A DNA stretch of 57,424 nucleotides, the filler included, from Platydemus manokwari (Eukaryota): NCBI GenBank assembly GCA_037951405.1. It is 6 parts of 6 records of this genome, joined end to end, with 100 filler letters (N's around TTAATTAATTAA, not from the genome) between each part and the next. Parts side by side here need not be neighbours in the genome. Positions count along the whole stretch, not along the records: positions 37,954 to 47,657 come from JBBMOY011214767.1; 5 more parts are not named here. One strand, written 5' to 3'. A program made the translations under genes and the position numbers. The notes under the pieces are model-generated. The model was not told the origin of the DNA. It was given only the letters and a program-made list of their open reading frames with translations, and made no database searches. Positions 3,569 to 47,657 of the stretch are shown piece after piece (position 1 is the first letter of the stretch; each line of letters opens with the position of its first letter).

Positions 3569-6500
3569 TTAAGTAAGCCGATGTAATTTTCAGATATTGT
3601 TTTATAAAAGTAATAAAAATTTAATTCACTTCACTTCCTCATACTTATCTCGAAAGAATTAAAAATGAAAAGGAGTAACAATCTTGACAAATAAACAGAT
3701 CCAACAGTTGCTCGAGATGTTCTATGACTGACGATGTTCAACATTTATGAAATCTGGCACTGGATGTGCGATTTATTGTTTGAGCTCCATTATGTTCCAG
3801 ATTTTATCGATATTAGCTGTTTTATCGATAAACAACTGTGTCATTTTATCCCTCTGAACTTATTTTCCATTGCTATCAGTTGGTTTTAAATATAAATCTC
3901 AAAAGTTAGTTTGCCTTTGTAAAATAACTTGTCAACGTTTTTCCTTACAAGCTTATTCATTATATGATCAGCTTCTTTTTGTATTTCTTATAATTCAACT
4001 TAACACAATAGATTTATCGAAAAAATCAATCGACAATGACAAACTTTTAAATCAATTTCATTTCGAAACACTCGGCATTACCAAATGATTTGATAATAAA
4101 ACTCCTCAAATGAAAAATCTTTAGAAGTATTGATTTTATACGATATTCTAACTTAAACCTTGATATTTTAAATAATCAATCATTTTGTATCGATTTCTGA
4201 TAACTTGTTAATAGATTGTTAATTTTGAAATTTTATGACGGTAAAAAGTAGAAAATATTCAAACAATCCATTTCGATTCCTTCACATATCTATCAGAACT
4301 GTTAAAATTCATGATATTTGGCTAGTATAATTTCTTTCACTTCAATTTTTGTTTTATCCGATTATGTTTCCAGTGCAGTTGACCAATTGTTTTCTTACTA
4401 TCCCGAATGGCTCAATATTGTTCAAGTGTCTTTGAACTGCCACAGCACTACATTTTTATATAGAACTTCAGTCAATGATTTCAATCGATTATTTCTATTG
4501 GTTGGTCATCTTTGTGTTTTTAAATCAAATTTATTTTCATTCAGAGTATACAAATATATTTTATTATTATTAATTATATATATAATTTCTCAAGCCATTT
4601 ATTATAATATACTGGCATTTTGTTATAAATTCATATCAAGGGACATTTAATTACACAATCACATTATTTCATTTCATCTCATTTTTAGCCACTAACTAAT
4701 TCACCAAAACACATTTATTTTCATTAAAAACCCTGCACTGCACACCGATAAACATAAAAATATACGAATTCCAAGACATTAATTCGTTGAAAGTAAGGGA
4801 AGCATGATAGAAACGAATATTAAAAGTTTCACAGAGTTCTTCACAATTGGCCTGTGCTGATCCAACTTCTACTGCTAGTCCAGTAGCTATTTGTCATGAA
4901 CGGATGGCTTTTACAATGTCTGTGCAACTTGGTCCATCAAGGATACTCTAATATGTTCTTGTTAATGTGCTGTATTAGGCTTTCAATTGAATTTTATCTA
5001 AAAAAGACATCAATGTAACCCAGATGGAATTAAAGAAGACAAACTGAAATTCTTAGCCAGAAAACTTATAAAAATATTTATTATTTTGTGTAAACAATAT
5101 TAAGAGTATATTTCACATAACGAGTGACCATGACGATAATTTGAAGGCATTTAATCAGAACTAAGAGATTGAGAACATTTCTATGAAATCGATATAACTG
5201 TAAGCTGATACAGATGAATCAATACGGATCACTATCAAGTTGCGACAGAAATAATAAATCAAAATTTATAATAATCAATAAATTATAAATTTATGGATTT
5301 AATAAAGTTCATAATTGATTGGAAAATTGACTTTTTTATCTGTATAATTAATTAGAATTTTTAATTTGTTTTCTTACAAGTTATTAAGACATCACTTGAG
5401 ATTAATTTAATGTCTTTTCGAATATTTTCATCCTGGTATTCATATTGTTCGCTTATGAGTGTCGAGCGTGTAAAAAACTAAGCTTTTAAAAAATAATTAA
5501 AAAATTCTAAATAAATATAATTGGAATATTCTGAGAGAAAATCATTAATGATTTGCTTAAACTTAATTGAATCTTCTAGAGCGATTTGCTTAAATTAATC
5601 AATATAATAGTGTGTGTGTGTCGAATATTATAAAAAAGCCCATTTTTAACGACAATAGCCAGTCTTGCTTGGTCGGTAACTTGTGTATTATTCTTAACTT
5701 GCGTGATTTTTAGCAACCAGTCTTCATGTTTGTTTCCTATTCTGTCTTTGACATTTTGGTGTTGATCCCATATTGTGTGATAGACTATCATTGATTTGAA
5801 AGAGGTTTAGCTGTAGTTATTGTGGTTGAGATTGTAACATTTTGGTCAATGTAAATTTTGGATTGAAATTGTTGATTATAAACGCCATCACGAGCATGAA
5901 TTTTTTTATAAGGATATGACTACAAGAGAAACATGTTAAAACTTCTCGAAATCGTATCCAAACCATTCGAAATTATGATGAGAATCGAGATAGAAAAGAC
6001 TACTTTATTCTTTAATATTGGCTATAAATTTTGAGATATTCGATAAAAAATGGACTAATTAAAGATCTATATTAACACAACATATCCACTGCACATACAC
6101 TCTCGTATCGATGCAATCATTTTTGTTTTGCTAGAAGTCGTAAAACAAATTAATAGACCTTAACTATGACTCTAGCTAATGTCAGTAGACGACTTCAATA
6201 CACCGATATGAAAAACATTGTCCTGGTTTCAATTCTGCAGTCCTAGCTGTGATCCAATCATTTATTAATTTGAGTTTATTTTAAAAAGTCGTAATTTTAT
6301 TGATAAATCACGAATAGTAATAAATCTGTAGGTTATCAAAACTAAATCAATCAAAACATTATCATTGCATTAAAATGTCTATCAGGATTAGCATTGAAAG
6401 AAATTTTTTTCTAATGGATAGTTTTATAGTAATCCAATAGAAAATAAGATCACAAGTAAACTTCTTCGAAGCATTGAATACTGATCTGGAAATTGAAATC

Positions 6501-10784: not shown

Positions 10785-12697
10785 ATTTAGACAATGTATA
10801 AATCCAATATTCCATGAAGAATCCACTCAACAGCACCCATAATACGGAACTGATTAAACCAAATCAAACAACAGAATAATCTCCAAAACCGAAAATCATA
10901 AATGTTAATTTAAATATTAGATAAAAACGTTAAATATATCGAAAATGGTTGAATATTTGATAAAAATAACCTGGGTAAAAAGCCATAGCCAAGAAATTGA
11001 CTCAACTTCGTTTATATTATCCGGAGATGATTTATTAAAAAAATTTCAGAGTTGTTGAAAGTAAAAAATTAAAAACGACTTTATAAAGTTTTATTGAAGA
11101 GAATTTAATATTTATATTATACATCTAAAAGTCCTTTATAGAATGAAAATATCATGAATGGGCCAGATAGAGAAAAAACGTTTGATATCGTTAAGAAACT
11201 AAATTCCTTTCTTGTGATAAGCAATTTTTATAGAATTTTTAAAAAGAGGAAATTGAAATCAGACACACATTGGTGTGCGCATTAAAAATTTAGAACAAAT
11301 AGGAAAGCAAACCGATTTAAAACTTGAAGAATATTAAAGTAAAAATTTAAATTATAAATTTAACTTTGAATAGATTCGTATGTTTGTAGAAACGATAATG
11401 AGTTGCGTAATAGTGATAATGTATAACTGAAACCTTACTTTATACGATTGTTTCATTACGGCCAGAGAATAACTCTAAACCGGTAAAGCATATCTGTGAA
11501 AGGTTCTCAGTTCTATTTAAAGTATAATCTACCCTCAAAGAGCCATATTTTTGTATTAAGCTACATTTGTTGGTTTTAATAATTCAAAAATATAATTTAA
11601 AATTTTTCAATATTTTTTCGTTGCAGGGAACCAAGAGTTTAAAAGAGTCATATGATAGAATTAAGAACCCAGTATACGGACCCAACGCATTCCGGAAAGA
11701 TAAAACCGACTTTGAGGGATTTATTGATTAAACTTTTCAGAGATCTTTGTTAGAAGGAAACGGGGAATCTAGAATTATAGTAATTTGCACTGAACGTAGC
11801 GGAAGAATCTTTCGATAAATAGAAAAAATGAATCATTCTTCTAGAATAAGTGGAATGGACGAAATGGAACTATATTCAGAAATTACTCAACATGTGGCAT
11901 ATAATACATCGTGCCAAATATTCAAGTTAGTACATGTCAGAAATCAAATAATATGATCAGATTTTACAGGGCCAATTTTAAGCTATACAATCGAAGCTAT
12001 TCTGTGTCTGGGAATAAATTCACTCCATATTATTTGTGTCACAATAATTCATCACGTACAAAATTAAGCATTATCATTTATTTTCTCGTTGAAACATAAA
12101 AATAAACTTTTTTCTTAAAAATTATTTTTTATCTCGATGTGCCAAACGGTCTGGACATGACTAACTTATCGAGAAAACGTTTAGTCTGTTAAACCTACAA
12201 AATATCTGTAAAATATTGATTTGGGAAGTAAACATATTAGAAAATAATGCCGATCAGGAAATTACAATTTTAATTTATAAATGAAAAATTTTAAAAATCT
12301 CTTTTTTATCAAGTGCATACCAGTGTTGAAATTTGTGTTCTGCCACCATTGATTAGCTCCACTAATTATGAAAATATGAGATTAAATGAGACTGATTAGT
12401 TTTATCGATTATGTTTCATCAAATCTATTATAAACAACCAAAACTTAATAGCCATTATGTATAGAGGCCATTGATTTGGAAAATTATTTGGAGCCGCTTA
12501 TTATGCTGGCGCCAAATACTTGAATGTGATACAATTAATCAAACTGCTGAAGAACCCCATGGGTTGTGCAGGACGGAAAATCAATTTCAAGAAAGTTATT
12601 CTCCACTCAAAAGTGGACCATTTTTAGCTTGAAGATCACGTAAGTCTTTCAATAAAAAATCAATAATCCAATAAATTTCAAATAATTAATAATCAAT

Positions 12698-37953: not shown

Positions 37954-38027
37954 TGGGCGGCATGTCGTCTTCTGTTGCTCGGATGCGATCTGCGAAGGCA
38001 AAAAAGCATACAAATTGTGATTAGGCG

Positions 38028-38094
38028 CCGTCCGTCCGTCCGATTGAAGCCATTGCCCTCGTTCAACCTGCTTGATCCAGCATTGGTTATATTT
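38028..38094 (-). repeat. Left-arm terminal module (38-nt hairpin block plus CAATC(GGAC)n)
   Basis: The reverse complement of 38057-38094 is identical to 47530-47567. The reverse complement of 38028-38046 is identical to 47590-47608. Confidence 0.95.
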
Positions 38095-40225
38095 GAGGGC
38101 ATGGATGATGCTTATTTCCTGTTCTTGTGTCTTTGGTGTCGCTTGCTCTATCCTTCCGTCGGCAGCAAAGGAGATTTTGGCTGTCTTCTTTTATGGGGTT
38201 GATTTCTAGTGGTGTTTCGGTGTGTTTTTCCTTGTCCTCTGGGGCGTTTGTGATCCAGTCCTGTCCAGGACTTTTTTTTCCAGGTTGCGCCGATTTTCCC
38301 GGCTGTTTGGTTTCTTTCCCGGCGAAGACGCGCTCAGCTTTTTCGAGGATCGCAGCGTAGGACGCTTTTTCTTCATTTTGCTCCGCTATGAGGCGTCTTG
38401 CTTCTGTGAGTTCCGCTAGGGCCCTCTGGAAATCCGCGGCTACCTTCGGATTTATTTCTGTTTCCTCCTCCGTGCTCGTGTTCTCTGCTGAGGCCTCTTC
38501 TTCTGATGTGGTGTCTTCTGTTTGGGTTTTGTGGATAATGTCTTTCTGCTTCTCGATGATCTGTCTTTCCTCTTTGATTGATGTTAGCAGCGTCTCGGTC
38601 GTCTCCTTGATCTTGTTCATTCTGGCGACCTCCTTTTTGATATTTTGTAGGATTGACTCATGCTCTCCTTTATCTTGGTCTTGTTTCCTCATGAGGGCTT
38701 CTTTTGCTTCCAGCAGTAGTCTTATTTCCTCCTTCAGTGCTTGTCTTTCTCCACGTATTCCTTTGAGGATTGCCTCGTTTTCCGTCTTAACTTGTGTCAG
38801 CTTGGCGACTTCTTGCTGGACCTGGATTTGCGCTGCTAATATTTCCTGCAGCATTTTTTCGGTGTCTTCGCTGTTGTCTTGTCTTGAGGCGTTCTCCTTG
38901 TCTGTTACTTTCTCTGTCATCCTTTCTAGCTGCTCCTTGAGGTCCTTGACTTCCTTTTGTAGTGCAGTTTTTTCCGTCTGGGTGATGCCCCAGGCTGCCT
39001 CTGTCCTGCTCCGAGCTTCTTTGAATGGTATATTTTCCATGGTGGATAGCTTGAGCGTTTCTTTGCACTGTTGCAGGTAGGGGCAGCCCAGGTATCGGGC
39101 TCCGTGGGCTCCCAGGCAGTTGGCGCACTTCCGGTTGGTGTTGGCCTTCCGGTAGTCCTCATCTTTCTTGGCCAGTGGGCAGTCGTTGTAGCTGTGGGCC
39201 TCGGCGCAGTACCTGCAGACTTCCGGTCCACGACAGCTGGGTCTTGTGTGTCCTGCTTTAAGGCATCTGGAGCACTGTATTACTCTCGGGATGAGTCGCT
39301 CCGGCTGTTGTTGTCTTCTGTAGAAGTTGATCTTGTCTGGGATTTCACATCCCTCTGTTGAGATGATGGCCACCGTCGTCGGGGTGTTATTTCTGGTGGT
39401 GATTCTCTCTGCAGTCTTGAAGACGAGGTGCGGGTTGTCTTTTTGGAGTTGTTTCTTGATATCGTCGTTGCTGAGTTGCGTGGGGATCCTCTTGATCACC
39501 CACCTCCTCTCCTCTACGAAGCTTGTGATCTCGATCTCCGTGTCGTCGTCCAGCTGCAGTATTTTGCCGCTTTTGGCGACTTGGGCCAGCAGGATTCTGG
39601 TCGTCTGCATCTTGTTAATGAAAGCGACGATTCCATCCCGAGTCTTTCGAAGGCTGGCGATGGTTCTCTTGCCTGTCGTTGTTTCGATGAGCGAGATGAT
39701 TTTATCTCTTGTCATTGCCGCTAGCAGGTTGGTGTCTTTGTTGATTTGCCGGATGGCAACTTTGGTGACTTCCTTCTGCCCTGCTTCAGCTGTGGCTTCT
39801 GGTTGAGGTCTGGCTTGAGACTTGTCAGCTGCTGTCCCTCTGCCGGCCGCTGACTTCTCTGGTGATTTGCTCTTTCGCCCTGATAAGGGCGCTGTGGTTA
39901 TATTTTTTGCCCTGAGAAGGGCAGTGGGTGGTTCTGTTTTTGCCCTGAGAAGGGCATTGGGCGATTCTGCATCAGAACCTTGTGGCGGTGTCCCAGGAGA
40001 CTCACTGCTCTCTGGGGCGGGAGTTTCCGCTGGTCGCCCTGATAAGGGCGTCGTGGTTATATTTTCTGCCCTGATAAGGGCAGTGGGCGGTTCGATGTCC
40101 GAACCATTAGAAGGTTGGTTTGGCGGCCCGCTTGAAGCTGGGCTGCAAGCGGTCGCTGGCTTGCTTGTGGCTTGAGTCCCCCTCGTCGCCGCCGGCCGTT
40201 TTCCTTTTCCTCTTGACTTGGACAT
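38087..40225 (-). CDS. Gag-like ORF1 paralog (three CCHC knuckles, long coiled coil); frame open to 40396, likely start MSKSRGKGKR at 40225 (712 aa)
   Basis: VIQCSRCLKAGHTRPSC...CRYCAEAHSYNDC...CANCLGAHGARYLGC is preceded by an RRM-like VIKRIP...AERI region. No pol frame follows. The ATG at 40396 lies upstream of the minus-strand TATA box (40348-40354), so the 40225 start is preferred. Confidence 0.88.
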   Translation of the reverse strand: MSKSRGKGKRPAATRGTQATSKPATACSPASSGPPNQPSNGSDIEPPTALIRAENITTTPLSGRPAETPAPESSESPGTPPQGSDAESPNALLRAKTEPPTALLRAKNITTAPLSGRKSKSPEKSAAGRGTAADKSQARPQPEATAEAGQKEVTKVAIRQINKDTNLLAAMTRDKIISLIETTTGKRTIASLRKTRDGIVAFINKMQTTRILLAQVAKSGKILQLDDDTEIEITSFVEERRWVIKRIPTQLSNDDIKKQLQKDNPHLVFKTAERITTRNNTPTTVAIISTEGCEIPDKINFYRRQQQPERLIPRVIQCSRCLKAGHTRPSCRGPEVCRYCAEAHSYNDCPLAKKDEDYRKANTNRKCANCLGAHGARYLGCPYLQQCKETLKLSTMENIPFKEARSRTEAAWGITQTEKTALQKEVKDLKEQLERMTEKVTDKENASRQDNSEDTEKMLQEILAAQIQVQQEVAKLTQVKTENEAILKGIRGERQALKEEIRLLLEAKEALMRKQDQDKGEHESILQNIKKEVARMNKIKETTETLLTSIKEERQIIEKQKDIIHKTQTEDTTSEEEASAENTSTEEETEINPKVAADFQRALAELTEARRLIAEQNEEKASYAAILEKAERVFAGKETKQPGKSAQPGKKSPGQDWITNAPEDKEKHTETPLEINPIKEDSQNLLCCRRKDRASDTKDTRTGNKHHPCPQI
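39876..40082 (-). repeat. Five 16-nt hairpins YGCCCT-TMTC-AGGGCR
   Basis: Copies at 39876-39891, 39908-39923, 39941-39956, 40035-40050 and 40067-40082. The outer pair covaries between C-G and T-A. Confidence 0.92.
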
Positions 40226-40347
40226 ATTTTCCGGTATTGTGCAATCGTGGCTGGCTGCCAATGGTGTAGCACGTCTGTCTCCGCTGAGCGCTGAGAAGCA
40301 CTGTGTGTGTGATTGAGGATGTCTCAGAATCGCCGCCGATATCGGAG

Positions 40348-40469
40348 TTTTATACCTCGGCGACGAGGAAGACGAAACGGGCGGTTGCGACTGCATGCGT
40401 GTTTCTAGCGATTTGATTGGTTGTGCCGAATTCGTCCTTTTCCTCGTCCTTTCCGAGCTCGTATATAAA
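40348..40469. promoter_or_regulatory. Putative mirror-symmetric bidirectional Pol II promoter
   Basis: TATAAAA on minus (40348-40354), TATATAAA on plus (40462-40469), ATTGG (CCAAT box) at 40416-40420. Inverted sub-motifs: CTCGG/CCGAG, GACGAGGAA/TTCCTCGTC, GACGAA/TTCGTC. Confidence 0.7.
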
Positions 40470-40931
40470 GCCGGTAAAGGTGCCGTTTTTTTACAACTAC
40501 ATCAGACATCGTGCTTTGCATCCCATGTGCTTGGCAGCGTTTACCCATTCAAGGGGCCCTGAAATATTCAGACGGATTGTGTTTGCTTCTTGCTGGATCT
40601 TACTTTGATGTGTACTTTGTGGCGGATTTTGTGACTTCAGTGATGTTTCAGTGAATTTCGAGTGCGGCGAGCGAAGCGGAGCGGTTCGTAAGTAGGCAAT
40701 AATTCAATATATACTTTAAACCTAGGTAAAATAACTAGCCATAGCCTTAGCCTTAGCACTAACTAAATAGACAATCTGTAACTGCTAACATAAATAACAT
40801 CGCTAACTATTAAATAATTAAACAAGATAAATATATAAAACAGGAATAACTAGTCAAGAAGCTAATTAGGTAATCATAGCTTAAAAGCAAAACTTATTAA
40901 CTACTCAAAGACAAGATTAGCAACGGTAACC

Positions 40932-42563
40932 ATGCCCCCCACTACTAGAGGCAAATCTGTGGAGAAAGTTGCACCAGCAAAAAGTCAGGAAAGGACAAAC
41001 GGTGTGGCTAAACAACCCAGACCGCGGACGGTGAAGCCCATCCCCGAACTTCCGGAGGAAGTCCGGCAGGAAAAAGTAAAAGAACAGAGGGACAAAAGAA
41101 CGGAAGGACTACTGATCCGCGTGACACAATTGGAAGGAGGGGAGTGCCGCCTAACATCAATAGGTAAAAAGGCGGCAATCAATGTACTGGAAGGCGGACT
41201 CGGGACTCGAGCGATAAGAATCATCTCATTCAACCCAGATAAATCGATGACAATAACACCTAACAGAGGCTCGCCAGTAGATAAAATTATAGACAAAATA
41301 GTAAAACAGGACGGACCAGAAACCATGGACCTCCAAACACATGGAATCAGGATTAAACTTGAACTCGTTCCTCCAACATCAAAGTTCGTGATAAAAGGAA
41401 TAAACCCGACGACGAAAATAGACAAGATCCAAGAGGAATTAACAGCTGAAAACCCGAAGGTGAAGTTCGTCAATGTTGAAAGGCTGTATGGAAGCAACGG
41501 CATAACCACGTCGATAATAGTCGCAGTATGTGAGAGCGCAGATACTCCACACAGTATAAGATACATGGGGAGGGAGAAATACACTGAAAATTTCATTCCC
41601 CCCGTAATCCAATGCGCCAAATGCAACAAATTTGGACACACGAAAAACGTATGTCGGGCAACCCACCCGACTTGCAAATTTTGCAGCGGACAACACTGGC
41701 ACGGGGACTGCCGCTATGCGAAGGAAGATAAAGACTATAAGCTGAAAAACAAAAATAGGAGGTGCTCCAATTGCCAAGGGAACCACGGAGCCAGATTTGG
41801 CGGATGCCCGGCCCTCAAGCTGACAAAACTGGCCTGGAGAGAAGCCAACCTAACCAACACATCAATGCGGATCACCAAGTGGAGACAAGAAAACACGAAA
41901 AATCTACCGGAAACACAATCAGAAGTAAGAATCATTCAGGCCGAGATGGCAAACATAAAGAATAAGCTAAGTAGCGAACATCCAACAGACGCAAAAAGGG
42001 ACCAAAACAAAAACGGGAGAGAAAACCCTGCAACCCCTAACTCGGAACAAACGAAAGAAATAGTAACACAATGGAAAGCAACAGCAACGGAAATAGCAAA
42101 AGTGAAAAAAGACACAAAGTCAACAGAAGAAAGACTTACTAAGCTAAATAAGAACATAGAAGAAGCAGCCAACAGAATGGAGCAGGCTAAAAAGGAGATG
42201 ATGGATATGAAAGCAGATATCACAATAATGATTGAAGAAGGGAAAAAAGAACTCAAGCAGCTAGCCGACAATATAAAAAACGATTTGGCAGCCAAAGACC
42301 AAGCCACACAGGAGGCACTAGGAGGAAACTCGAATTGGCAAAACGAAGTTGCTCAAACCTTGAGAGGAATCAAGGAAAGACTCAACCAACAGGCGGCAGA
42401 GCTCAGAGAGACAAAAAGAGAAACAGCAGGTATGATACAAGAAGCAGTGGCGTTCGCCACGGGCAGGAGAGCCAACCCAGCATGGAAAGTGGCGGAGGAG
42501 GAAGAAGAAACAACTGAGGAGAGCAGCACAGCAACAGAGGATACAGAGGGAGAAGAAAACTAA
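40932..42563 (+). CDS. LINE ORF1, gag-like nucleic-acid-binding protein (three CCHC knuckles plus coiled coil)
   Basis: VIQCAKCNKFGHTKNVC...CKFCSGQHWHGDC...CSNCQGNHGARFGGC. It lies 41 nt upstream of ORF2. Confidence 0.93.
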   Translation: MPPTTRGKSVEKVAPAKSQERTNGVAKQPRPRTVKPIPELPEEVRQEKVKEQRDKRTEGLLIRVTQLEGGECRLTSIGKKAAINVLEGGLGTRAIRIISFNPDKSMTITPNRGSPVDKIIDKIVKQDGPETMDLQTHGIRIKLELVPPTSKFVIKGINPTTKIDKIQEELTAENPKVKFVNVERLYGSNGITTSIIVAVCESADTPHSIRYMGREKYTENFIPPVIQCAKCNKFGHTKNVCRATHPTCKFCSGQHWHGDCRYAKEDKDYKLKNKNRRCSNCQGNHGARFGGCPALKLTKLAWREANLTNTSMRITKWRQENTKNLPETQSEVRIIQAEMANIKNKLSSEHPTDAKRDQNKNGRENPATPNSEQTKEIVTQWKATATEIAKVKKDTKSTEERLTKLNKNIEEAANRMEQAKKEMMDMKADITIMIEEGKKELKQLADNIKNDLAAKDQATQEALGGNSNWQNEVAQTLRGIKERLNQQAAELRETKRETAGMIQEAVAFATGRRANPAWKVAEEEEETTEESSTATEDTEGEEN

Positions 42564-42604
42564 AGACCACAAGAAAGCAAGTTAAATCGCCGAGGAAACC
42601 AACA

Positions 42605-45600
42605 ATGGCAAGAGAAAACATAACTTTAGCGCAGTGGAACTGCCGAGGTATTGAGGGAAACCTCCCCAGCATGAGACAACTACTGGGAAATGACGTGGAC
42701 GTCCTAGTACTCCAAGAAACCCATCTAAAGCAATCACAAAAATATAGAAGCCGAGGATTCACCGCTATCAGAAGGGACAGACCGAACAGAGAAGGAGGGG
42801 GGGTAATGATACTAGTCAGGGAAAAACTCCAGATCATCAATCAAGAAAGCTTTGGAACAACCAACATGGAGGGTGTCAGTGCGGAAATAGCTGGGAACCC
42901 AAGGAACGTAACAATAATTAACATTTACTGCCCGGTAGGTAGAATAGAAGAGGAAGACATAAGGGAACTACAGGACAGATTGAAGACTACTACCATAATA
43001 ATGGGGGATTTTAACTGCCACCACCCAGTGTGGGGCTCTAGAAGAAGCAGCGCAGGAGGCAGAAGACTATTGGAATTTATTGAAACCAACCAGCTAACAA
43101 TCCTTAATGATGGGTCCATCACAAGAGTAGATCCTCGGCCGACCAAAAGTGACTCATCAGTAGATATTACGATAGTGACAGAGGACCTAGCAGGAAGTCT
43201 ATGGGAAATAGGTGAGGACACTACCAGCGACCACCTCCCAATCATAGTCAGGACCACCACCAAACCCAGGAAAAACAAAGACAGCACTAGGCCCACATTC
43301 ACGTACAAAAACGCCAACTGGACCAGCTTCATAGAAGAGCTAGAAAGAATAGACCTTAGGAGGAGAGATCAGGAAGAACTAGAGTCATATGTGGACAGAT
43401 TCACAGTAAGTATTTTAAAAGCTGCTACCAAGCACATACCAAATAGAAACATGCCTGAAAACATCAGAAGGGCAGCACGACCAACCACACATGGAGGACA
43501 CAGAAACAACCCAACAAACCGTGAAACAGAGGAGGGTAGTCCGCCCACACAAAAAGACAACAACACACCAAGAAACAAGAATCCAGTAATATGGTGGAAT
43601 AATAATTGTACACTGGCGGTACGAAACAGGAAAAAAGCGCTACAGAAATACAGAAGACAGCGCACAGAAGAAAACTATGAAGAATACAAAGAATACAGAA
43701 ATTCAGCCAACAAAACAATCAAAAAAGCCAAGGAGACCGAATGGAGAACCTATTGCCAGAAGATCAACCCTGACACACCAGTAAGCGATGTCTGGAAGCA
43801 GATTAAAACAATAAAAGGCAGCAACAGGACGAGTAACATCCCCACAATAAAACAACCTACAATGGCAATCACGGATAAGGAAAAAGCGAGTGCATTTGCA
43901 GAACACTTCCATAAAGTTTTCTCCAATGAAAGGACCGGAGTGCAAGAACTAGAGAGAAGGAAGAAATTCTTAGAGGAAGCAGAGGAGGAACCACAGGCGG
44001 ATATTGAGGACTACTATATGGATACGGACCTAACTGTGGATGAAGTGACAGCAGCAATAAGGGAAAAATCAGATACGGCAGCAGGAGCTGATATCCTCAG
44101 CTACACGATTTTAAAAAAGGTACCAGCAAAAATAATAGGAACATTGACAGAGCTGTATAACACCATCTGGAGGACAGGAAACATCCCAAAACAATGGAAA
44201 ACGGCAATAATAGTGCCCATACGAAAAGAAAACAAAGAAGGCCACAAAGTAGACTCATATAGACCCATAGCGCTAACATCTCACATAGGAAAAATCATGG
44301 AAACGGTAGTAAATAAAAGAATAAAATTCCACATGGAGAAAAACGACATATACAGCACGACCCAATCAGGCTTCAGAAGTCAGCGAAACACCATGGACCA
44401 AGTCATAAAACTAGAGAACGACGTCAAGAAAGGTTTCAAGAAAGGAGAAAAGACTATAGCAGTCTTCCTGGACCTAGAACAGGCCTATGACCAGTGCTGG
44501 CGGGAAGCAGCACTCCTTAAACTAAATAGAATAGGAATAGTGGGAAGAACATTCAAATACGTAGCAAGCTTCCTCCAGGATAGGACTTTCAAAGTCAGAA
44601 TTAGAAATGAGGAGTCACAGACCTTATGCCAGGAAAACGGAATACCCCAGGGCTCAGTCATCTCCCCAACAATCTTTACAATATTAGTAAACGACCTAAA
44701 TGAAGTGATAGAAGATGAGAAAACGGGCCTCTCACAATTTGCGGATGACTGTGCCGTATGGAGAAGCGGGAAAGATGTAAAGTTCACCAGGATCAAACTG
44801 CAAGGACAACTCCAACACATCGCGCGCTGGATGGAAAAATGGGGTTTCAAAATTAACACGGAAAAGACAGTCAGCATGGTTTTCAGCAGGAAGAGAAAGA
44901 AAGAGTATATGGACATCAAGATAAAGATCCAAGAGAAGAAAATAAAAAGAGTAGCCAGCACCCGCTTCCTAGGAATGATCCTGGACGACAAACTGACCTG
45001 GAAGCCACATATCGATAAAGTAGTAGAAAAGGGCAAGAGAGCCCTCAATATTCTCCGAGTCATCAAAGGGAGCGGATGGGGAGCCCATACGTCAACAATG
45101 ATAACACTGTACAAGGCACTGATTCGAGGAAAAATTGAGTACGGAAGCATAGTATACGATGCAGCCCAAGAAGGCACGAAGAAGAAATTAGACACCATCC
45201 AAAATATGGCAATGAGAACAATCCTAGGAGCAGGTAAGTGTACGTCGAAGGAAGCCATGGAAGTCGCCCTAGGTCTAACACCGCTCAACATAAGAAGGAA
45301 ACAGCTAACGTATAACTACTGGACCCGGGTAGCACAGGATGAGAACCACCCGGCATTTTCGACATTCACAGAAAATAGGAGCAAATGGGGAGGAATACCG
45401 ATCTTTAAATTACAGAGACCAGCAGGATGGGATGCGGCGGAAGAAATGAAAAAATCAAAAGAACTGGCTAATACAATCCTGGAAATTAAAACACGAAGAC
45501 AAACAGTTCCACCCTGGGAGTGCAAACTACCAATAACAGATAGCAGCCTGGCCACGAGAATATCTAAGAACACAGGAGACCTGGAGGCCAAGTGCATCAC

Positions 45601-46465
45601 CGAGGAATATATAGAAGAAATTAGACGAGACAACCTAATAATATACACAGATGGATCCAAAAATAACCAGGGGCAAGTAGGAGCAGGGATAGTCGTCCCA
45701 CACTGGAACATCTGCAAATCCTTTAAGCTGACAGACCATGCCTCAGTATTCACAGCCGAACTCATAGGGATCCTCAAGGCAATCGAAACAGCGACGGAGA
45801 ACCCACCAAACAAACTAAGCATACTGACAGACTCACTGGCGGCAGTTCACGCACTAGGAAACTTTACAAGAGGAACAAGACCGGACATAAAGGAGGAAAT
45901 CATAACCAAAACCACACACCTTAGAAACTTGGGATGCCAAATCAGCATAGGTTGGATACCGGCGCACAGGGACATCGCGGGAAATGAGAAGGCAGACAGA
46001 GCAGCCAAAGCAGGTATATACAGTAAAGACCAAATCCAAACCGGCCTGGGAAAAACTGAAGGGAAAAGCATCATCAAAACCTACGTGCAAAAGAAGTGGC
46101 GGGAACAATGGAAGGACAGCCCGAGGGGACGACTGGCGCACCAACACCTGAATGAGCCAACATTTAGACCCCAAGTCAAGGAACTAATGAAAATTCCCAC
46201 TAACCAGAAGATGTGGAGACTGCGACTGGGATACTGGAAGGATCGATACGTCAGCCCACTATGCATGCAGTGCCTGGAGACCAACACAATAGATCACTTC
46301 ATGATAACCTGCAGCAACTTCACAGAAGAGCGGAAAGACCTGACAGATTATTTCACAAACATGAACAAGGTAATGACGACCAAAGAATGCCTACATATAA
46401 ACAGCGACAAAGAAATACAAAGATTAGTCAAACAGTACATCAACCGAACAGGAAAGGACATATAG
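42605..46465 (+). CDS. LINE ORF2: APE endonuclease, reverse transcriptase, RNase H, CCHC (I group, e.g. I/Nimb/Loa-like)
   Basis: APE: QWNCRG, LQET, GDFNCH, SDHLPI. RT: YRPIALTS, QSGFR, FLDLEQAYD, GIPQGSVISP, FADD. RNase H: IYTDGS, TAEL, TDS, WIPAH..GNEKAD. C-terminal CMQC..H....C. Uninterrupted 1286 aa. Confidence 0.97.
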   Translation: MARENITLAQWNCRGIEGNLPSMRQLLGNDVDVLVLQETHLKQSQKYRSRGFTAIRRDRPNREGGGVMILVREKLQIINQESFGTTNMEGVSAEIAGNPRNVTIINIYCPVGRIEEEDIRELQDRLKTTTIIMGDFNCHHPVWGSRRSSAGGRRLLEFIETNQLTILNDGSITRVDPRPTKSDSSVDITIVTEDLAGSLWEIGEDTTSDHLPIIVRTTTKPRKNKDSTRPTFTYKNANWTSFIEELERIDLRRRDQEELESYVDRFTVSILKAATKHIPNRNMPENIRRAARPTTHGGHRNNPTNRETEEGSPPTQKDNNTPRNKNPVIWWNNNCTLAVRNRKKALQKYRRQRTEENYEEYKEYRNSANKTIKKAKETEWRTYCQKINPDTPVSDVWKQIKTIKGSNRTSNIPTIKQPTMAITDKEKASAFAEHFHKVFSNERTGVQELERRKKFLEEAEEEPQADIEDYYMDTDLTVDEVTAAIREKSDTAAGADILSYTILKKVPAKIIGTLTELYNTIWRTGNIPKQWKTAIIVPIRKENKEGHKVDSYRPIALTSHIGKIMETVVNKRIKFHMEKNDIYSTTQSGFRSQRNTMDQVIKLENDVKKGFKKGEKTIAVFLDLEQAYDQCWREAALLKLNRIGIVGRTFKYVASFLQDRTFKVRIRNEESQTLCQENGIPQGSVISPTIFTILVNDLNEVIEDEKTGLSQFADDCAVWRSGKDVKFTRIKLQGQLQHIARWMEKWGFKINTEKTVSMVFSRKRKKEYMDIKIKIQEKKIKRVASTRFLGMILDDKLTWKPHIDKVVEKGKRALNILRVIKGSGWGAHTSTMITLYKALIRGKIEYGSIVYDAAQEGTKKKLDTIQNMAMRTILGAGKCTSKEAMEVALGLTPLNIRRKQLTYNYWTRVAQDENHPAFSTFTENRSKWGGIPIFKLQRPAGWDAAEEMKKSKELANTILEIKTRRQTVPPWECKLPITDSSLATRISKNTGDLEAKCITEEYIEEIRRDNLIIYTDGSKNNQGQVGAGIVVPHWNICKSFKLTDHASVFTAELIGILKAIETATENPPNKLSILTDSLAAVHALGNFTRGTRPDIKEEIITKTTHLRNLGCQISIGWIPAHRDIAGNEKADRAAKAGIYSKDQIQTGLGKTEGKSIIKTYVQKKWREQWKDSPRGRLAHQHLNEPTFRPQVKELMKIPTNQKMWRLRLGYWKDRYVSPLCMQCLETNTIDHFMITCSNFTEERKDLTDYFTNMNKVMTTKECLHINSDKEIQRLVKQYINRTGKDI

Positions 46466-47529
46466 AAGTAGGGCACAAGTAAAACAGAAAGGATTAGGTC
46501 AAGTAACGAACCACAGCAAGACAACCTGGCCAGCAAAGAAGTAGAGGACGGTAAGTAACCCCCAAGACGGTGGAACCTAGAAACAGAGAGAGGATCTCCC
46601 AGGTGGAACGAGACCCAGACAGAGAAGAAAAGATGACGAGGTCCCCAAACCGAGGAGAGCTAGAGATGGAGCCAACAGCAACTCAAGTACAAGAGAACCA
46701 ACAGAGGGTGCAAACATGGCTACCAAAAACCAAAGAGGGATAAAACAAATAACCTAAACAACGAATAGCCAAATAGACTAAAGGATTAAAAATAACACTC
46801 AAAATAACTAAGCAAGTAGAAAATCTAAGGAAACGAACAAATAAGTAAACAAACAGTAAACAGTAACAATAAGATAAAAGCCCAGCAAAAGATAGACAAA
46901 TATAAGTAACAAAAATCAAAACCAGGAAAGACCTAGCACTAAAGTAGAACTCAGACTATAAAAGCTAAAATACTAAAAAGTCTATGACAAATAACCTAAA
47001 GCAATGAAAATTACAATCGCGAAATAAGTAAATTTCAAAGAATACAACCTAAAGAACAATATAAAGTACAAAGGCTTACCAAAACGGCCACAGTAAAACA
47101 TAGCAAATTATACTAGAACCTAAAAATAGGCGAAAGGCGGTCTAGCAGGGCACCCGAACAATCTCCCCAGCGACGATCAATGGGGAGCAAACCTCAAGGC
47201 GGCCCTGCGGGATAAAAAAACATAAAAAGCAAACAAAAATTTAAAAAAATAAACCAACTAACGAACTAAAAAAGAGTAACAATAGGCGAAAACAACGAGC
47301 AAAACCGCATAAAGACCGCAAACAAGGAACCGAAGAGAACTCTCGACCTGTCCACAGTGCTGCGAAAGGCCTGGAAGCTACCTCTGGCAAACTGGCAGCT
47401 GCAACCCGGGAGGCACGACGTCTGCTGCAAGGAAGCGATCGACCGAAGCGTGAAGAAACAACAAACGTAGCAACACAGTCAACTCATCAACAAAAGAATG
47501 AAGAAGATAACGCCCTAAAAATACGCCTT

Positions 47530-47612
47530 AAATATAACCAATGCTGGATCAAGCAGGTTGAACGAGGCGGAATTTTTCTTTTTTTTTCCCAATCGGACGG
47601 ACGGACGGACGG
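47530..47612 (+). repeat. Right-arm terminal module (38-nt hairpin block plus CAATC(GGAC)n)
   Basis: AAATATAACCAATGCTGGATCAAGCAGGTTGAACGAGG, then a T-rich spacer, then CAATCGGACGGACGGACGGACGG. Confidence 0.95.
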
Positions 47613-47657
47613 GCCGTTTTTTTAGCTCCCAAGCGGATCACACACACAGTGCTTCTC

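Follow-up and report, generated by a model that had tools for sequence, protein, structure and literature searches.

The window analysed here is a stretch of 57,424 nucleotides (filler included) from the Platydemus manokwari assembly GCA_037951405.1, in which six parts are joined end to end. The locus of interest occupies one of them, a 9.7-kb piece at positions 37954–47657 (JBBMOY011214767.1; all positions are those of the whole window, unless another locus is named). The piece contains an imperfect palindrome, with two outward-facing TATA boxes, flanked by what are evidently two different elements of the long interspersed nuclear element (LINE) type, i.e. a unit with gag as its sole gene to the left, on the minus strand, and an autonomous LINE with gag and pol to the right, on the plus strand (Table 1). 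The three complete reading frames of the piece are unbroken, with zero stops and zero frameshifts, and two further units are cut by the piece edges. An earlier note on this DNA had placed a bidirectional promoter between two gag genes, which is correct in that both neighbouring open reading frames (ORFs) encode homologous gag proteins, though of two different elements. The possibility it raised of a locus driving two arrays also fits the arrangement, each side being an outward head-to-tail run of units.

The palindrome at 40340–40476 is real. The best gapped alignment of its halves, of 40340–40376 with the reverse complement of 40431–40476, gives an imperfect inverted repeat of ~120 bases with 34 matches and three gaps, each of exactly 3 nt, and reaches ~8–15 nt past each TATA box. 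The symmetry centre is at ~40404–40409, and a middle region of ~54 nt is without palindromic symmetry. The mirrored blocks named in the earlier note are all present, in equal order on both sides, i.e. CTCGG/CCGAG, GACGAGGAA/TTCCTCGTC and GACGAA/TTCGTC. With three of four scoring schemes, the score of the palindrome was reached by none of 1000 dinucleotide shuffles and by none of 1328 other 139-nt windows, all taken from the same piece (37954–47657); with a heavy gap cost it was reached by 16 of the 1000 shuffles and five of the 1328 windows. The single-stranded DNA fold of the region has a z value of −2.2, which was equalled by 5 of 200 shuffles. As a separate observation, the arms (40340–40476) have a GAN/NTC triplet rhythm, and mechanically listed ORFs traverse both of them, including one of 769 aa starting at 40396; the rhythm, together with the 3-nt gaps, is read as repeat slippage, not as coding.

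The two TATA boxes are 108 bp apart, lie inside mirrored GA-rich blocks and have a CCAAT motif between them; TATAWAW occurs nine times over both strands of the piece, two of the nine being these boxes. The layout is that of a divergent promoter, in which two outward TATA boxes lie within ~100–250 bp with CCAAT between, and in this respect the anatomy ascribed to the palindrome beforehand is borne out. The description 'TATA-CCAAT-TATA' is right as to order, but the CCAAT motif is not part of the symmetry, being single, off-centre and on the minus strand (40416–40420). Similarly, the proposed analogy with histone gene pairs, in which two outward TATA boxes ~100 bp apart also have CCAAT between them, holds for the motif layout but not for the genes; both neighbours here are LINE units and no histone gene adjoins. 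The transcription starts that had been predicted lie no more than 7 nt (about 40320) and 6 nt (about 40500) from unit 5' boundaries that were fixed independently, the left (40313) as the onset of identity to a second gag-only copy and the right (40494) as the first base past a target-site duplication. The usual TATA-to-start distance is ~30 nt, which the 32 nt of the autonomous LINE fits. Inspection of the leaders by eye for initiator or downstream-element motifs gave no exact fit. 

Table 1. Features of the palindrome locus, with positions along the whole window
Feature	Position	Strand	Remarks
Putative third unit (beginning only), beyond gag-only tail	37954–38021	−	tentative; at piece edge
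Complete gag-only non-autonomous LINE unit	38028–40313	−	88-nt leader, intact gag ORF, ~60-nt 3' end with stem-loop, (ACGG)n tail
42-nt 3' block, gag-only unit	38057–38098	−	98% identical to 47526–47567; stem-loop core; contains stop codon of gag-only ORF
Gag-only ORF, 712 aa	38087–40225	−	first ATG (40225) downstream of unit 5' end; no breaks
Candidate upstream copy of 10–11 bp target-site duplication, gag-only unit	40308–40318	−	partner 38016–38025; tentative
Left arm of imperfect inverted repeat	40340–40376		holds minus-strand TATA box; from gapped alignment
TATAAAA box, leftward	40348–40354	−	first T (40354) 41 nt upstream of first base of gag-only unit (40313)
Lone CCAAT of spacer	40416–40420	−	in non-palindromic middle; ~45 nt from right TATA, ~64 nt from left TATA
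Right arm of imperfect inverted repeat	40431–40476		holds plus-strand TATA box; from gapped alignment and fold
TATATAAA box, rightward	40462–40469	+	first T (40462) 32 nt upstream of first base of autonomous LINE (40494)
Left copy of 12-bp target-site duplication, autonomous LINE	40482–40493	+	20 nt after right TATA
Complete autonomous LINE, 7.1 kb	40494–47612	+	438-nt 5' untranslated region (UTR), ORF1, ORF2, 1.15-kb A-rich 3' UTR, 3' stem-loop, (ACGG)n tail; no broken frame
ORF1 (gag, 543 aa)	40932–42563	+	intact
ORF2 (1286 aa)	42605–46465	+	intact; AP-type (apurinic/apyrimidinic) endonuclease, reverse transcriptase, RNase H
42-nt 3' block, autonomous LINE	47526–47567	+	stem-loop core
(CGGA/ACGG)n tail, autonomous LINE	47594–47612	+	4.8 units
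Right copy of 12-bp target-site duplication	47613–47624	+	abuts tail
Second gag-only unit, first 21 nt	47637–47657	+	exact reverse complement of 40293–40313; ends at piece edge

The order of events on the right side is given by the autonomous LINE. The 12-bp repeat that brackets it is read as its target-site duplication, and fixes its limits; the repeat is exact, and among 20000 shuffles of the 5' region just 5 contained a word as long from the tail end. The leader of a second gag-only unit resumes 12 nt beyond the right duplication copy. With the LINE insert and one duplication copy subtracted, the distance from the right TATA box to this leader is 44 nt, compared with 41 nt on the left (an arithmetic result, the pieces being compared separately). 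The LINE has thus evidently come later, via target-primed reverse transcription, between the right TATA box and the second gag-only copy, and the right TATA box evidently faced a gag-only unit originally. Because the duplication places the candidate promoter outside the autonomous LINE, the RNA of the LINE cannot carry it. The earlier suggestion of an element whose replication preserves the promoter is without anything to show for it.

The assignment of the right-hand element is evident from its proteins and ends. ORF2 has Pfam matches above the cut-offs to Exo_endo_phos, Exo_endo_phos_2, RVT_1 and RNase_H, with each profile covered essentially whole, and its best sequence match in the PDB is to the solved LINE-1 ORF2p structures. 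These domains, a CCHC gag, the duplication, a simple-repeat tail and the lack of long terminal repeats (no long terminal direct repeats were found in the piece) are the features of LINEs with an AP-type endonuclease and RNase H, i.e. of the I-like group.

The left-hand unit has a single gag ORF and no pol, with only ~60 nt from stop codon to tail, and is therefore a gag-only, non-autonomous unit. Its 5' boundary is set by 21/21 identity with the copy at 47637–47657, and its tail, which matches that of the autonomous LINE, is at 38028–38042. Mechanical listing of the minus-strand ORF (40396 to 38087) gives 769 aa, starting at an ATG that is inside the palindrome and upstream of the TATA box. 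The protein has three CCHC-type knuckles, and its C-terminal half is coiled-coil-like. The 5' part of the ORF (39873–40093) contains 33-nt tandem repeats and a third copy 126 nt off, with cores that are short, GC-rich and hairpin-like. Translated, the repeats correspond to a ~19-residue peptide motif that recurs in the N-terminal region, for which the gag of the LINE itself offers no equivalent.

Evidence for how the left unit arrived is suggestive only. The two copies of the candidate duplication (40318 to 40308 and 38025 to 38016) have an exact 7-mer in common, positioned as expected, and a further three bases match beyond a 1-nt gap; the 7-mer is equalled by 756 of 20000 shuffles. Behind the unit, the 68-nt flank from 38021 to 37954 opens with six bases that also open the gag-only leader, and an ATG plus two proline codons close it at the edge of the piece; the best local match of the flank in the 5' region of the autonomous LINE is to the start region of ORF1, with 165 of 2000 shuffles scoring equally. 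A third unit may thus begin in this flank. The ATG with its two proline codons is also reminiscent of invertebrate H2B, and a histone H2B gene at this outer flank was considered; the idea was dropped on account of an earlier out-of-frame ATG in the presumed leader and of the best local match to the LINE ORF1 start.

What links the two elements is found in their proteins and at their 3' ends. The two gag proteins are homologous (29% identity over 303 residues, E = 3e-40), the region of homology spanning three Cys/His knuckles and then a coiled-coil-like stretch. Knuckles of retroviral nucleocapsids are matched weakly, and Pfam gave no family for either the gag-only protein or ORF1. Given the homology, the knuckles and the coiled-coil-like stretch, both are therefore LINE gags. 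At the 3' end of each unit there is a 42-nt block, followed by a short spacer and then the (ACGG)n tail, and beyond block and tail there is no long DNA similarity between the gag-only unit and the autonomous LINE. The two 3' ends fold into one and the same hairpin, the outer stem of which is made in each from different, non-homologous flanking bases, and the sole difference within the block converts a U-G pair of the hairpin to a C-G pair. Such a hairpin usually identifies a 3' recognition module that a LINE has in common with a non-autonomous partner, as is established for stringent pairs of LINEs and short interspersed nuclear elements (SINEs). By this usual mark, the left unit is a non-autonomous, gag-only partner, of the kind that uses the reverse transcriptase of the autonomous LINE; two copies of the partner are seen, the second over 21 nt only. 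Each unit has a strongly A-rich sense strand, and the sign of the AT skew flips between ~40500 and ~40700.

Relatives indicate how such elements are arranged elsewhere. An exact look-up found no match for any of the three window proteins (gag-only, ORF1 and ORF2), and hence no other copy of the locus; the 3' block, the middle of the candidate promoter and the gag-only leader had no DNA match in viral, metagenome and prokaryote-genome collections. An exhaustive search of representative proteins places the core of the gag-only protein (~residues 180–500) in a widespread LINE gag family, with 3419 relatives at E ≤ 0.001, and a word search with the same protein gave one weak match, from a tick. 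For the reverse transcriptase region, the nearest relatives (52–54% identical) are from metagenomes and the named ones (40–44%) are from bivalves (or their symbiont bins), a limpet and fishes. Taken by themselves, these sources would make an aquatic animal the probable host. The ORF2 protein aligns over its full length, with 43% identity, to that of one related locus (L002), where two LINEs with 47% mutual identity are directly successive and have in common a 3' motif of 35 nt as well as the tail, (AAGTC)n. A second (L007) carries one LINE as a tandem repeat of 7.2 kb, the copies being 99% identical. Head-to-tail placement thus recurs in the lineage.

How the two sides of the palindrome came to face each other is informed by the pattern of their similarity. 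The mirror extends over only 37–46 nt per arm, the next 26–29 nt cannot be aligned, and then the leaders are identical at 21 of 21 positions. As the sides are unalignable between arms and leaders, promoter and elements would differ in history, and the mosaic suggests conserved promoter blocks with elements placed adjacent to them.

The explanation that we favour, tentatively and a little short of thinking it probable, is that a fixed divergent TATA/CCAAT promoter heads two stacks, which were built by successive insertions just downstream of each TATA box. The palindrome would be a compact divergent RNA polymerase II promoter, i.e. fixed DNA at the head of two outward, head-to-tail stacks of LINE units. 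Each TATA box would direct transcription from the first base of the adjoining unit, or from a few bases upstream of it, and so yield full-length element RNA, and the promoter would not be copied during retrotransposition. New copies of the lineage would insert in sense orientation within the first ~45 nt downstream of a TATA box, with each newcomer displacing older units outward and gaining the promoter-proximal place. If the third unit holds, the left stack would read promoter, gag-only unit, third unit, and the right stack promoter, LINE, gag-only unit. The order on the right is evident from the nested insertion; that on the left, like the insertion preference and the promoter activity, is inferred.

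Several points weigh against this explanation. Promoter activity is predicted from the sequence of one locus, of which no second copy was found, and the promoter grammar of the host is assumed. LINEs normally rely on internal promoters, and both elements have 5' UTRs (88 and 438 nt) able to hold one. The 41–44 nt between TATA box and gag-only leader exceeds the canonical ~30 nt. Targeting is inferred from three insertions at a single locus, the left (gag-only) duplication is weak, with p about 0.04 for the 7-mer, and the third unit is visible over 68 nt only. Finally, no TATA box is present at the array junctions of the relatives (L002 and L007), and the palindrome is therefore a feature of this locus, not of every junction.

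Four alternatives were weighed, which we rank in the order of inverted duplication, host promoter, relic and artefact. In the first, which is unlikely, a promoter and a gag-only gene (a master copy or a domesticated gag) underwent a head-to-head inverted duplication at the DNA level, the halves then drifted, and the LINE inserted by chance into one leader, with no targeting. The mirrored arms and the intact gag-only ORF accord with such a history, and the near-equal distances from TATA box to leader (41 versus 44 nt) would follow from it automatically. The mosaic similarity does not, however, since 21 straight matches are very unlikely at the level of identity of the arms without later homogenisation; arms with indels, an unalignable stretch of 26–29 nt and leaders identical at 21/21 positions are thus not the product of one duplication followed by drift. 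In addition, the gag-only unit has the 3' hairpin and tail of the LINE and a candidate duplication, and so looks inserted, not segmentally duplicated, and only coincidence would have brought the LINE to precisely the start site that is predicted. Nor do the two gag genes form a mirrored pair derived from an inverted duplication, the origin that the earlier note had thought probable for the promoter, the left gene being that of the gag-only unit and the right one ORF1 of a LINE that was inserted later, with a 12-bp duplication.

It may instead be that the promoter belonged to a host gene pair and was colonised by LINEs, with open promoter DNA being a preferred or tolerated target and the elements using internal promoters of their own, though we think this distinctly unlikely. 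The anatomy is as established for divergent TATA/CCAAT gene pairs, the duplications put the promoter outside the elements, and 5' UTRs of 88 and 438 nt could house internal promoters. By contrast, neither side shows any host coding sequence; the sole flank (38027 to 37954) best resembles the start of ORF1 of the LINE itself and has an earlier out-of-frame ATG, and tblastn with all three proteins found no coding remnant in the spacer (40226–40931). Random colonisation also does not predict that three of three insertions are sense-oriented.

That the palindrome is a functionless relic, e.g. a small foldback or MITE-like (miniature inverted-repeat transposable element) insertion or a hairpin-prone hotspot, with TATA-like ends that are incidental, is improbable. 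Its arms are indeed short and gapped, 16 of 1000 shuffles match its score under a heavy gap cost, and the three 3-nt gaps and GAN triplet rhythm could reflect slippage of a simple repeat. Yet there are two consensus, outward TATA boxes, each 32–44 nt from an independently defined unit start and with CCAAT between, in a piece with only nine TATAWAW motifs, and the palindrome is without an evident terminal duplication of its own. A MITE or foldback element as such was rejected; the terminal inverted repeats of such elements are conserved best at their extreme ends and have a short duplication around them, whereas the arms here are gapped and end in TATA boxes, and no duplication flanking the palindrome was seen. 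An assembly artefact, with repeats wrongly joined (as a chimera or by collapse) at the head-to-head junction, is very improbable, for although the contig is short and repeat-rich and one of its ends repeats an internal 21-mer in inverted form, a fold-back chimera gives a perfect palindrome, not an imperfect one that has indels and, at its middle, 54 nt of unique sequence, and the 12-bp duplication and resumed leader make coherent biology.

Other features of the elements and their relatives are recorded here as observations. The 5' UTR of the LINE (40494–40931) is in two parts: up to ~40690 it is T/G-rich, opposite in composition to the rest of the element, and the remainder is A-rich, with (TAGCCT)n at 40736–40757 and an internal TATA-like run at 40831–40840, ~95 nt before the ORF1 ATG. 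GTAAGT at ~40688 is a possible splice donor, and in L002 the second LINE likewise has a T/G-rich 5' UTR. Seven bases into the LINE, 40501–40520 has the same first four bases as the gag-only leader (40313 to 40293), with GTGCTT, common to both, slightly further on; by this comparison, made by eye only, the two units may share a short 5' terminal motif too. The shared 3' block holds CCAAT and ATATAA, 68–100 nt from the start of the next unit; it may double as a promoter of that unit in the manner of HeT-A, a reading that was not adopted in view of this distance.

Runs of T are present just upstream of unit 5' ends at the junctions of three lineages, i.e. T13 in L002 (5717–5800 and 13328–13368), T30 in L007 (7392–7421) and T7 inside the duplication described here (40486–40492); they could reflect a preference for such targets, or else bases that were added as first-strand synthesis ended. 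A more distant relative (L001, 30% identity in ORF2) has 5.6 tandem 166-nt monomers before gag (5295–6219) and an (AACC)n tail (12161–12194). Tandem monomers before gag are a typical self-carried LINE promoter; the tail implies that four- or five-base repeat tails run in this group. A 1.3-kb contig (L004) carries a gag fragment 46% identical to the gag-only protein, and its start (1–220) resembles a host exon closed by a GT splice donor; if the exon reading holds, this relative would sit in an intron of an animal gene.

Comparison with known systems helps to delimit what is proposed. The locus is like those of HeT-A, TART and TAHRE in having a gag-only unit beside a gag-pol one, A-rich sense strands, long 3' UTRs and head-to-tail units, and like HeT-A in that transcription of a unit would be supplied from DNA outside it (here, the candidate promoter). 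It differs in its (ACGG)n tail, as opposed to oligo(A), and in a pol with RNase H, which the pol of the HeT-A group is not known to have. The HeT-A promoter is located in the 3' end, i.e. the 3' UTR, of the upstream neighbour (PMC5537684), by contrast with the separate TATA palindrome that is the candidate here. Drosophila-type telomeric arrays consist of head-to-tail units in a single orientation that are added at the chromosome end (PMC5537684). Here, there are two opposed stacks, and the target-site duplication of the LINE marks an internal insertion and not an end addition. Internal LINE promoters (5' monomers or initiator-type 5' UTRs) also differ, in that the candidate promoter lies outside the duplication of the autonomous LINE.

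LINEs of the SLACS/CZAR/CRE type land a few bases downstream of the start of the spliced-leader RNA gene, and the host promoter transcribes the element. The present elements would work alike, obtaining a host-type promoter via precise placement (41/44 nt from the TATA box for the gag-only units and 32 nt for the LINE, at one locus). Those LINEs have a restriction-like endonuclease and one defined target gene, however, whereas the endonuclease here is of the AP type and there is no RNA gene; no Rfam match to an RNA gene that might serve as the insertion target was found in the piece at E ≤ 1. Tested against the defining features of HeT-A arrays and of spliced-leader LINEs, the locus belongs to neither. 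The gag-only unit is also like HAL1, the ORF1-only LINE derivatives, and SINE-LINE pairs, in which the non-autonomous unit has the 3' recognition module of its partner LINE, here the 42-nt hairpin core (98% identity) and tail. It differs from HAL1 in that its gag is only 29% identical to that of the LINE, so that it is not a recent deletion derivative. A literature search on LINEs at TATA or histone promoters, or at head-to-head promoters, found nothing relevant.

LINEs lose the DNA upstream of the transcription start at each copying, and the known answers to this loss of the promoter are internal promoters, use of the 3' end of a neighbour (as in HeT-A) and co-transcription with a targeted host gene. 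The general proposal, i.e. that this LINE lineage and its gag-only partner offset promoter loss by landing, in the sense orientation, within a few tens of bases after TATA boxes that belong to a dedicated palindromic promoter, such that one bidirectional promoter feeds two outward stacks with the youngest unit nearest, is unlikely as it stands, and what is claimed is limited to a single 9.7-kb piece. If true, a fixed mirror-image TATA promoter, contested by successive insertions, would be another answer to LINE promoter loss, and would explain how a gag-only partner and an autonomous LINE are expressed from one place. On a cautious reading too, the locus preserves a clean, datable order, from promoter to gag-only unit to LINE, and is a clear example of a gag-only, non-autonomous partner that is defined by having its 3' hairpin and tail in common with a LINE; the lineage has relatives among mollusc and fish elements.

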